A stretch of DNA of 63,098 nucleotides, counting the filler, from Reticulomyxa filosa (Eukaryota; Protista; Foraminifera), in assembly GCA_000512085.1 (NCBI GenBank). It is 15 parts of 15 records of this genome, joined end to end, with 100 filler letters (N's around TTAATTAATTAA, not from the genome) between each part and the next. Parts side by side here need not be neighbours in the genome. Positions count along the whole stretch, not along the records: positions 31,951 to 34,675 come from ASPP01004840.1; 14 more parts are not named here. The stretch is one strand, 5' to 3'. The notes beneath the pieces are model-generated. The model was not told where the DNA came from. It searched no databases and saw only the letters and a list, made by a program, of their open reading frames with translations. Shown here one piece after another: positions 31,951 through 34,675 of this stretch (the first letter of the stretch is position 1; each line of letters opens with the position of its first letter). Position numbers and translations under genes: made by a program.

Positions 31951-34675
31951 CATTTCCATGATATAATATCTAATACTATTTTTTGTGCTGCATAATATTC
32001 TTGACATGATTTATGTAAAAATTGATATTTATTATCACCTATTCTTCTTAATACATATTTAGCAATACTATCACCATTAAAATATTTTTCCCAATTATCT
32101 TTTATTTTTAATATTGATATATTATCTATTTCATTCATTTTTATTTCTATTTTTTCATCAATACTTTTATTCTCTATTTCTATTTTTGGATCTAATGTAC
32201 AATATATTTCTTCTTTTTCATATCTAATACCTTTTTCAATAGCAATTGAATTTTTATATAAAAACATATCATATGCTAAATCTTGACAATATTTTTGAAA
32301 TGATAATTTTATTTTTTTAAAATTTGTTTGTATATTTAATTCTGATAATTTATTACAAATATTTTGTATATGTATATCAATCCATTGTTCATTAAATGTT
32401 TCATATACTTGTGTTTTTAATATTTTAGTTCTTAAAGGTTGTTGTTTCATTAATGATGGTAATACTGTTAATAATAATTTTAAAAAAAATGGTTCTTCTA
32501 TCATTTTATTTAAATTTGGATAATTTTTTAATGTTTTTTCATATGTTTGTGATGTCCAATCTTCTTTTGTATTAATTTTATTCTTTTCTTTCATTTTAAC
32601 AAATTTTTCAATATAATCATGTATTTGATTATTTGAAAAAGGCCATAAATATATTATTGATGTTGATAAATTTTTACCAATTAATACTTGTTTTACATCA
32701 TCATTATTTAATATATTATTTCTACAAGTAATAATTATTTTTGAATTCCATTGATCTAAATTAAAACGATTATAAAAATATTTTTCTTTATCATTATTAT
32801 TATTATTATTATTATAACTATCAAATATTTCATCAAATCCATCTAAAATAAATATAAATGAAATATTTTCACGAATAATATCTAACATTTCTTTATTAAT
32901 TTGTTTCATTTGTAATGCTTGAGAAATTAATCCTTGTTCATTAAAATGATTATAATATTTTGGTAATGATATATAAATAGGAATATATTTAGTTGTATTA
33001 TATGTTTTCCATAAAATTTCTTCTAAATAACGACAAAATAAACTTTTTCCAGATCCTGAATTTCCTTGAATTATCATAACTTTTTTTTGTTGATAATCAT
33101 TTTTTGATTCTTCTAAAAAATTAATTATATGTTCATAACAATCATAAGCATTATTTTTTTTTCTATCTATATTATCATTATATGGATAATTATTTGCTTG
33201 TAATGGTATATATGTTTCTATAGCTTGTGATATTATAATATCTTCTTCTAATTCTAATTTTCTTGATTCTTGTAATATTAATGAAACATCTATACAACTT
33301 GCTGGATTTGTTTCACCAATAATATATTTTTTATAATATTCATATAAAATTACATAAATAGCTTGTCCTTTTATTTTAATAGGTGTAAATTTACAAAGTT
33401 GATCATATATAAATTTAATTAATTTTAATACAATATTATTATTAATTTGTTCTTCTGTTATATTTTTTAATTTTGGTGATTTTAAAATTCCTATTTCTAA
33501 ATTAGATTTATAATAACTTGCAATTCTTTTTATTTCTTTTTCATCAATCCATTCATATATAATATCATTCATTTTTATTAATATATCATCACTTGCTCTT
33601 TTTAATTCTTCTTCTTTTGATGAATTATTTGGTTTCCATCCTTTAATTAATTCATAAAATATATCAATTAATTTTGGATTTTCAATTATAGTATAACCTT
33701 CTAATGTAGTAAATTTTTTTAAAGTTGTTTGTATTTCAATATAAACATCATATTTTTGAATATATAATTTAATATTATGAAAACGATAATGTGTTTTTGA
33801 TTGTTTTTCAAAAAAATCTTTATCTTCAGAAATAATTAAATTAAATTGTTCAGCTTTTTTCATTATTGCAATAGCAGTTTGTAATTTTGTTAAATTATCA
33901 CATAAAAGAATAAATCTTCCAATATCAAATACTTTATTAAAATCACCATTATAATTTTTTTGAATCTTTTCTATTAATATTTCATTATCTTCTTTTATAT
34001 TTAATTGTTTTATAATTGTAATTGAATATTTTTGTAATTCTGTTACTAAATTATTTATTTCAATACTATTCATTGCTTTTTCAATTCTTTCTTTTAAATC
34101 TTCAATACTTATTGCATGTTGTCTTATTTTTTGTGCATTTAAATCATAAGAAATTCCAGATTTAATTGAATATAAACGTTGATAATGATTATCTTTTACT
34201 GATATTGAATCACCTCCATTTGTACATATTGAATATTCACAATTATAAAACATTACTTTCATAATTGATGCAATTGTCATTTTTTTACAATCAGGACAAC
34301 AAAATGATGTCTTATCTGATATAAATGAAATATTATCAAATCCAATGTTAATCCAAACTGGTAATTTTTCTTTTGATATAAAACAATTTTCATTTGTGCA
34401 ATATCCTTGCAAATTTATTCCTGATTTTATTTCTCCAATTTCTGTTTTTTCAATTTCTTTTTGAACACTTTTACGTTTGATTTGATTTGTTGTATTTCCT
34501 TCATTTATATTTTCCTCCAATTGTTGTTTCTATTTTCAATTTTATAAATATATATATATATATATTTTTTAAAATAATAATAATTATTATATCACATTTT
34601 CAACCTGCTCAATATTTTCCAATTGTTCAATACTTGTCTCTAATTCTAATTTCTTATTTGCATTCTTTGTTTTTT
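31951..34675 (-). CDS. NLR-like STAND protein: Cys4 Zn-ribbon-like module + RelA/SpoT-like nucleotidyltransferase domain + NACHT NTPase; truncated at both contig ends
   Basis: Walker A GNSGSGKS (33065-33042), YIPIYISL, Walker B FILDGFDE (~32855-32829), sensor IIITCR, P-F/L motif EPFFL and winged-helix motif YQFLHKSCQEYYAA. Upstream: EKIQKNYNGDFNKVFDIGRF...KDFF...THYRFHNIKL...YIEIQTTL (~33998-33642) and GINLQGYCTNENC...CPDC (~34421-34285). A short upstream exon lies at ~34595-34675. Confidence 0.85.

Follow-up and report, generated by a model that had tools for sequence, protein, structure and literature searches.

Toxic small alarmone synthetases have so far been known as bacterial weapons and anti-phage devices. 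For example, Tas1 (also called Apk1) transfers pyrophosphate from ATP onto adenine nucleotides, with the result that ATP is depleted and purine synthesis is blocked. Here we describe a gene of the rhizarian Reticulomyxa filosa, RFI_05553, in which a RelA/SpoT homologue (RSH) synthetase domain lies upstream of a NACHT NTPase domain. The gene is on the minus strand of positions 31951-34675 of the window, by which we mean the whole 63,098-nucleotide stretch of DNA that was analysed, and these positions are one complete 2725-bp contig (ASPP01004840.1) of the R. filosa assembly GCA_000512085.1. By both profile and fold, the closest solved relative of this domain is Tas1 of Pseudomonas aeruginosa (PDB 6OX6), a toxin that is delivered by type VI secretion and synthesises (p)ppApp. 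Tas1 and the R. filosa family have in common a K-x3-R-x3-K helix that lacks the RxK Arg, a D-x-x-R-x-T motif in place of D-x-x-G-x-R, an E-x-Q motif and a late G-H-x-x-Y-x-x-x-R motif. There are also several important differences. Specifically, the R. filosa domain is located N-terminally in a eukaryotic NTPase of the STAND class (signal transduction ATPases with numerous domains), behind a small four-cysteine (4-Cys) beta domain and with no secretion marker, and most of the R. filosa paralogues have His at the position of the acceptor Tyr and Phe where the Tas1 clade has Asp after Y-R. Identity to Tas1 is only 13-17%. The published survey of Tas1/Apk1 enzymes, with 2,959 homologues, covers bacteria only and never mentions eukaryotes (PMC12691689).

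A precedent for placing such a domain on a NOD-like receptor (NLR) does exist in fungi, as the first-pass annotation of this contig had noted. Proteins with the layout RelA_SpoT/NACHT/WD40 were catalogued in 2014 by Dyrka et al. (PMC4986451), and 17 cases are listed in Sordariales (PMC12258605), where they are rare and experimentally uncharacterised. Compared by published description only, the fungal proteins have the same order of domains and the same proposed enzymatic effector role as the R. filosa family. However, the fungal RelA_SpoT domains make up less than 1% of annotated NLR N-termini, whereas R. filosa, which belongs to another eukaryotic supergroup (Rhizaria), has a family of dozens that also carries the extra 4-Cys beta domain. 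A further comparison is with CapRelSJ46 and the toxSAS enzymes FaRel and FaRel2 of bacterial toxin-antitoxin and anti-phage systems, in which the toxSYNTH fold is fused within a single polypeptide to a sensor or regulator that holds it off until there is a trigger (PMC11782079), as would also be the case here. Where the R. filosa family has a NACHT switch, CapRel and FaRel2 are controlled by a small pseudo-Zn-finger domain, and their pyrophosphate acceptor is tRNA. The 4-Cys beta domain was considered as a possible counterpart of the pseudo-Zn-finger gate of CapRel. The bNACHT anti-phage proteins agree with the R. filosa family in their NACHT module, including both Walker motifs (A and B) and the winged-helix His, and in the effector-NACHT-repeat logic, while NACHT-WD40 proteins of Mortierellomycota and bacteria have only the NACHT-WD40 part in common with R. 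filosa and contain no RSH domain. In our literature search, NACHT and alarmone synthetases were mentioned together only in a study of bacterial NLRs (bioRxiv 10.1101/2022.07.19.500537). The architecture itself is already known; what is new is the lineage, the size of the family, the Tas1-like assignment and the accompanying beta domain.

A RelA/SpoT homologue domain upstream of NACHT

The contig contains a minus-strand open reading frame (ORF) of 856 codons that extends from 34520 and is still open at the contig edge (31953), with no stop codon in between. This ORF equals the deposited partial protein RFI_05553 (98% identity, the sole difference being an annotated 14-residue 'intron'), which bears out the rhizarian R. 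filosa as its source. All searches were run with the uninterrupted frame of exon 2 rather than with the joined exon 1 and exon 2 model, and the deposited spliced model served for comparison only. The first-pass annotation had read the protein as containing an intact NACHT domain with a RelA/SpoT-type domain upstream of it, and both parts of this reading hold. The NACHT domain (minus strand, 32598..33080, residues 481-641) scores 34.7 bits relative to a Pfam cut-off of 26.7. It contains a Walker A motif (G486-S493, 33042-33065), a Walker B motif (F555-E564 with D560 and D563-E564, 32829-32858) and a winged-helix motif (F834-A845, 31986..32021) with H836, which is conserved in the paralogue alignment. 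The role of this winged-helix His has been described for NLRC4 and bNACHT25 (bioRxiv 10.1101/2022.07.19.500537). These three motifs are found exactly where they had been numbered, and the same is true for D199, Y245-R246 and E262-x-Q264 in the upstream domain.

Residues 130-340 (minus strand, 33501..34133) are a genuine RSH synthetase domain. Five lines of evidence, namely Pfam, a profile search of the PDB, a search of a very large sequence library, profile-profile comparison and fold, agree with each other, indicating that the resemblance to RelA/SpoT is real. The Pfam family PF04607 (RelA_SpoT) matches residues 181-265 (33726..33980, profile positions 8-89 of 113) with a score of 22.5 bits when the whole ORF is searched and of 26.8 bits (E 6.5e-6) when the domain is isolated, relative to a cut-off of 27. 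The same family matches 36 of the 36 aligned paralogue domains (alignment A1, best E 1e-6), with paralogue RFI_08856 reaching 30.2 bits, and a precomputed PF04607 match is present on three paralogues. When searched against the PDB, the family profile gave a single match, which is Tas1 (E 0.078), and a phmmer search of the PDB with the RFI_05553 sequence by itself gave no match. Against 1.84 billion representatives, the family profile retrieved the R. filosa copies and then proteins from other sources at E 3e-8 to 1e-3, several of which pass or come near the RelA_SpoT cut-off (40.6 and 30.0 bits).

The profile-profile comparison used an alignment of eleven outside relatives from which the R. 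filosa sequences were left out (alignment A7). The R. filosa family aligned to it by hhalign with a probability of 99.3% and an E-value of 1.3e-20 over 154 columns, and these outside relatives alone match Tas1 at E 2.6e-22, Bacillus subtilis YwaC at 3.7e-8, Staphylococcus aureus RelP at 2.9e-5 and RelSeq at 1.2e-4. The fold, which in RSH synthetases is a central mixed beta sheet with helices around it, gives the same answer. Specifically, with the AlphaFold model of the RFI_05553 RSH domain (mean pLDDT 78.6), the best 50 PDB matches reported by Foldseek are all RSH synthetases with Tas1 ranked first (E 1.2e-6). VIA-align Z-scores are 8-11 for RSH synthetases (117-159 residues) versus at most 7.9 for other Pol-beta-type nucleotidyltransferases, a lead of ~3 units, and the longest VIA alignment, of 159 residues, is again with Tas1. 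A shape search of the ESM Atlas with the same model also had RelA_SpoT clusters among its matches. The first-pass annotation had named the lack of any profile or structural match to the RSH fold as the result that would overturn its reading, and matches of both kinds were found.

RFI_05553 is one member of a large family. At least 38 R. filosa proteins share the RSH domain in a word-indexed search (E 1e-160 to 2e-34), and the family profile finds 44 cluster representatives at E<1e-10 among the 1.84 billion. The layout of the family is 4-Cys beta domain, RSH domain, NACHT with winged helix and then WD40, with 6-14 WD40 repeats located C-terminally to NACHT in the full-length paralogues. The suspicion that the C-terminal sensor lies beyond the end of the contig proved to be right, as the ORF ends at a position that aligns to residue 853 of the 1328-residue paralogue P0003, ~475 residues short of the full-length paralogues. 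Given the WD40 repeats in those paralogues, the off-contig sensor of RFI_05553 is almost certainly WD40 as well. None of the PADLOC models matches the RFI_05553 protein, and NCBIfam gives no meaningful match.

The 4-Cys beta domain (minus strand, 34131..34436) is a conserved all-beta domain of ~100 residues with invariant C41, C46, C75 and C78 (alignments A5 and A6). It precedes every RSH domain of the R. filosa family, and in RFI_08856 the pair of beta domain and RSH domain is duplicated in tandem (beta domains at P0001:25-121 and P0001:403-503). AlphaFold models this domain with a pLDDT of 87.9 and a pTM of 0.80. It has no Pfam family, as only weak zinc-ribbon matches are obtained, and no convincing fold match in the PDB (Foldseek best E 0.12, VIA best Z 5.2).

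Active site and the Tas1-like assignment

We mapped the active site by using an alignment with 14 non-R. filosa relatives (alignment A2), HMMER alignments to Tas1, YwaC and YjbM, and the residue roles established for FaRel2, where D90 holds Mg2+ and E145 and Q147 form the E-x-Q motif (PMC11782079). D199 (33924..33926) is the counterpart of the Mg2+-holding catalytic Asp D90, while E262 (33735..33737) and Q264 are the counterparts of E145 and Q147. The D199 and E262 positions are invariant across all 26 aligned sequences, in agreement with the first-pass proposal that these two residues are catalytic. Additional positions identified by the alignment are K176 and K185, which are the lysines of the basic triphosphate-binding helix, R202, which is the Arg of the Tas1-type D-x-x-R-x-T variant, Y245-R246, which are the acceptor-stacking Tyr and the Arg that follows it, and Y289 in the late G-H-x-x-Y-x-x-x-R motif. 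Overall, the conserved positions correspond to those with which FaRel2 binds ATP, Mg2+ and the acceptor base. The consensus of the R. filosa family keeps 17 of the 18 positions that are conserved at ≥93% in the 14 outgroup domains, and the sole position lost is the Asp following Y-R, which is Phe here. RFI_28085 and RFI_04233 are examples of paralogues that stay near this consensus and would be suited to assays. Note that the acceptor Tyr, present in 86% of the outside domains, is replaced by His in 29 of the 36 paralogues, and that RFI_05553 keeps the Tyr (Y245).

The family belongs to the Tas1/Apk1-like branch of RSH synthetases. Tas1 is the best match of the bridging relatives by ~14 orders of magnitude; an extended profile also matches the canonical (p)ppGpp synthetases YwaC and YjbM, and a profile search of the PDB found no sequence match to CapRel or FaRel2 at E-values up to 1. 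The assignment also changes the significance of a missing residue. The first-pass annotation had pointed to the lack of the Arg of the RxK motif as a sign of degeneracy. This Arg is indeed absent, but active Tas1 and its whole clade lack it too, so its absence in RFI_05553 is uninformative, and it is a different, clade-invariant Arg that RFI_05553 has lost. Because the domain is Tas1-like, its sequence favours (p)ppApp as the product over (p)ppGpp or modified tRNA.

The substitutions that do set RFI_05553 apart are located elsewhere. Residue I181 (33978..33980), which lies in the basic helix binding the triphosphate of ATP, is Arg in all 14 outgroup domains and in most paralogues, and D286 (33663..33665) is His in 13 of the 14 outgroup domains and in 92% of the paralogues, where it forms part of the G-H-x-x-Y-x-x-x-R motif. 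Both substitutions are private to RFI_05553, as is a Lys in place of the late Arg (K293). The absence of the late His had been noticed at first pass, and we find that it is confined to this one copy. The Tas1 clade signature is therefore broken in RFI_05553 at I181, D286 and K293 and is carried by the family. RFI_05553 retains D199, Y245, R246, E262 and Q264, but the loss of the Arg and the His suggests that its enzyme may be weakened. RFI_05553 is the most degenerate member of the family. We regard the RFI_05553 contig as a truncated and probably weakened representative of the family.

Sequence drift, proposed mechanism and competing explanations

Additional analysis of nucleotide composition revealed that RFI_05553 has undergone a strong drift towards A+T. 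Its coding GC content (31953-34520, minus strand) is 18.7% and its GC content at third codon positions (GC3) is 4.0%, versus a GC3 of 18-29% in three paralogues. Differences in which the paralogue has G or C and RFI_05553 has A or T (n=426) greatly outnumber the reverse (n=62), in contrast to comparisons between pairs of paralogues, which are roughly symmetric. The effect extends to the protein, where the FYMINK/GARP amino acid ratio is 5.37 relative to 2.67 ± 0.40 family-wide (z 6.7), and the direction of the drift rests on this family-wide test for composition outliers. Despite the replacement of ~97% of synonymous third-position G/C by A/T, 42 CAA codons and all ten aligned TGG codons persist, and there are zero stops over 856 codons. 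The retention of these codons while synonymous G/C was lost indicates that selection retained the protein during the drift. NG86 values of dN/dS for the RSH domain are 0.18-0.26, its dN being the lowest within the N-terminal half of the protein, and pairwise dN/dS is 0.25-0.30 for RFI_05553 versus 0.12-0.17 between other paralogues, all of these values being rough given that dS is near saturation and the composition is skewed. The RSH domain is under purifying selection. In a maximum-likelihood tree, RFI_05553 has a terminal branch of 0.31 versus 0.04-0.08 for its nearest paralogues. Its NACHT part is not unusually deviant (11 of 169 conserved positions). We read these patterns as a frame that has been kept open by selection despite strong AT pressure, with the enzyme domain somewhat relaxed.

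A four-sequence parsimony analysis of the direction of change, in which the private changes of RFI_05553 comprised 48 GC-to-AT versus 6 AT-to-GC, was set aside because the reverse trend that it gave for the paralogues arises from ascertainment, a hyper-AT copy being part of the comparison. A signature like that of repeat-induced point mutation (RIP) was also considered, but the CpA/TpG context was present in 21 of 39 transitions, which is too weak to call. Candidate causes of the drift are local AT-biased mutation, a RIP-like process combined with selection on the frame, or a contig that derives from another strain or organism.

In STAND and NLR proteins, binding of a ligand at the repeat sensor leads to nucleotide exchange and oligomerisation by NACHT and subsequently to activation of the N-terminal effector. 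We think it probable, with some reserve, that RFI_05553 is the middle of a STAND/NLR-type gene from a family with Tas1/Apk1-like RSH effectors that make (p)ppApp as an immune or allorecognition output. In the resting protein, the RSH enzyme would be held off by the 4-Cys domain, by the NACHT-WD40 part or by both. A ligand at the WD40 sensor would then cause nucleotide exchange and oligomerisation of NACHT, and the clustered or released RSH domains would form (p)ppApp by moving pyrophosphate from ATP onto an adenine nucleotide. The response, immune or allorecognition in nature, would consist of the resulting drain on ATP, by which the cell or part of the syncytium would be arrested or killed. 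R. filosa is a giant syncytial network. One might draw a parallel with heterokaryon incompatibility in fungi, though only as speculation.

TIR NADases are the familiar case of an NLR joined to a nucleotide-consuming enzyme. With the R. filosa family, this logic would reach a third lineage of eukaryotes and take in a new chemistry, ATP pyrophosphorylation. The family also leads to a testable prediction, which is regulated (p)ppApp synthesis in a eukaryote. In R. filosa, the effector for cell death or defence may be an alarmone synthetase. A more ambitious proposal is that the expanded NLR repertoire of this syncytial foraminiferan has a Tas1-like (p)ppApp synthetase as its death or arrest effector. 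It would be the first case in eukaryotes where (p)ppApp, and ATP depletion through an alarmone synthetase, serve as the output of innate immunity or allorecognition, with an RSH-NACHT pairing that predates the expansion of the family and is gated by the new 4-Cys domain. We put this forward only tentatively and would sooner expect parts of it to fail.

Several observations weigh against a (p)ppApp-producing immune effector in RFI_05553. The isolated RSH domain falls 0.2 bits below the PF04607 cut-off, and both the sensor and the true N-terminus of the gene are off the contig. A separate immunity protein normally keeps Tas1-like enzymes in check, and we know of none in R. filosa. In RFI_05553 the Arg and the His of the clade are missing, and the triphosphate-binding helix is longer by one inserted residue. 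RFI_05553 is also the most deviant of the 36 copies, differing at 21 of 134 family-conserved positions versus a median of ~4. The acceptor, be it an adenine nucleotide, a guanine nucleotide or tRNA, is not readable from sequence. Finally, most paralogues carry His for the acceptor-stacking Tyr, a site at which a Y-to-F change cripples FaRel2 (PMC11782079).

A competing explanation is that RFI_05553 is a decaying or catalytically dead paralogue that no longer makes a nucleotide product and is on the way to being lost or serves as a mere scaffold or decoy, in a family that may itself be enzymatic. The high count of deviant conserved sites, the unique loss of the Arg at I181 and of the His at D286, the long terminal branch, the elevated pairwise dN/dS and the extreme AT drift are all in line with such decay. 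Against it stand a frame that has stayed open for 856 codons and has retained its CAA and TGG codons through near-complete replacement of synonymous G/C, a Mg2+-binding Asp, acceptor Tyr, Arg and E-x-Q that are all intact, and a NACHT part of ordinary divergence, and we judge decay to be a possible but lesser explanation. It is also conceivable that the domain is active with another acceptor, either the tRNA 3' CCA end as for CapRel and FaRel2, thereby stopping translation, or in making (p)ppGpp that acts against bacterial prey or symbionts, a role against bacteria that Dyrka et al. suggested for fungal NLRs (PMC4986451). CapRel is among the structural matches to the RSH model (Z 9.6, Foldseek E 1.5e-3), the extended profile reaches the canonical (p)ppGpp synthetases YwaC and YjbM, and the His at the acceptor position of most paralogues is unlike any characterised enzyme. 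Relatives of Tas1 can furthermore be promiscuous, as exemplified by SaEAS, which makes both pppApp and pppGpp (PMC12691689). On the other hand, the sequence profiles favour Tas1 far above other enzymes as the nearest relative of the family, the bridging relatives matching Tas1 at E 2.6e-22 versus 3.7e-8 or weaker for the other enzymes. Tas1 is the only PDB match of the family profile, no sequence match to CapRel or FaRel2 appears at E-values up to 1, and the variants D-x-x-R-x-T, K-x3-R-x3-K and G-H-x-x-Y are shared with Tas1. A different acceptor thus appears unlikely to us.

Alternatively, the protein could serve in housekeeping or stress regulation, its STAND switch controlling a nucleotide second messenger, rather than act as an immune or cell-death receptor. 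Our literature search retrieved no publication linking Reticulomyxa with NACHT or NLR proteins, which leaves room for such a role. But a lineage-specific expansion to dozens of copies with WD40 sensors matches what is seen in the NLR repertoires of fungi and animals, and the closest enzyme relatives are toxins on bacterial polymorphic-toxin or extracellular contractile injection system (eCIS) proteins, which makes a housekeeping role distinctly improbable. As for the resemblance to RelA/SpoT being a chance motif match in an AT-rich protein of low complexity, the failure of the single sequence to match in the PDB by phmmer and its score just below the Pfam cut-off could be cited in its favour. 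We consider chance as already refuted and next to inconceivable in view of the hhalign result, the match of PF04607 to all of the copies, the exclusively RSH top matches of the fold search and the RelA_SpoT clusters returned by the ESM Atlas. A Tas1/Apk1-like RSH effector controlled by a NACHT switch is the reading that we retain.

Gene model and relatives outside R. filosa

The deposited model of RFI_05553 begins with an upstream exon fragment (34596..34675, minus strand) that is cut by the contig edge, which leaves the true N-terminus outside the contig. The first 23 residues of RFI_05553 are located in reverse-strand frame 2, from 34664, and this exon is without paralogue support because the region is not conserved. 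It is followed by a 66-nucleotide GT-AG intron of almost pure A+T (34530..34595, with GT at 34595-34594 and AG at 34531-34530), after which exon 2 continues in frame with the long ORF. This main exon (31951..34529, minus strand) is unbroken to the contig edge, its 856 codons being counted from 34520. As both exons are cut by contig edges, the RFI_05553 gene is truncated at both ends. The model also excises 14 residues as a second intron (ORF residues ~752-766, ~32222-32263, minus strand). This intron is probably spurious because P0003 aligns straight through the segment.

Outside of R. filosa, the closest RSH domains are in three metagenomic proteins with ankyrin or tetratricopeptide (TPR) repeats and NACHT (P0079 together with a neighbour gene, P0080, and P0098). 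In a maximum-likelihood tree the RSH domains of these metagenomic proteins form the sister group of the R. filosa clade with support of 93/83, each clade itself having support of 97-100. P0098 (L001:2745-6257) has a NACHT domain that is 32% identical to that of RFI_05553 over 407 columns (E 1e-62). The sister position of the RSH domains and this related NACHT suggest that the RSH-NACHT pairing is older than the expansion in R. filosa. The GC content of the metagenomic relatives is 45-50%. In L002, the RSH-TPR and Ank-NACHT parts are two called genes located 57 bp apart (L002:508-2025 and L002:2083-3222), and P0079 starts N-terminally with a hydrophobic stretch that resembles a signal peptide. 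When GTDB genomes, IMG/VR and JGI metagenomes were scanned with patterns, no further member of this Ank-RSH-NACHT group could be confirmed. All proteins that a word-based search from P0098 retrieved were NACHT-WD40 proteins without RSH, at a coverage of ~50%, from Mortierella, Benniella and metagenome-assembled genomes of Bacteroidota and Chlamydiota. The more distant RSH relatives are bacterial, and two of them are located within large eCIS_core proteins, which are polymorphic toxins with the RSH domain in the C-terminal part.

Three additional observations concern the wider distribution of the domain. P0044, an R. filosa protein of 1017 residues annotated as a 'vcbs repeat-containing protein', has an RSH-like domain near its C-terminus (residues 710-914) with no NACHT or other Pfam match, indicating that the domain is also used outside of the NLR architecture. 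P0050, from a 1581-bp ENA metagenome contig, is the only strong family match (E 2.7e-59) that is not traceable to the R. filosa genome record, and it indicates that a close relative of the family is present in at least one environmental sample. Finally, the best query TM-score in the ESM Atlas search (0.62, 175 residues) was obtained with a 59-member cluster of Nucleocytoviricota hypothetical proteins that have no common Pfam family, which is a model-based hint that giant viruses of protists may carry RSH-like domains.

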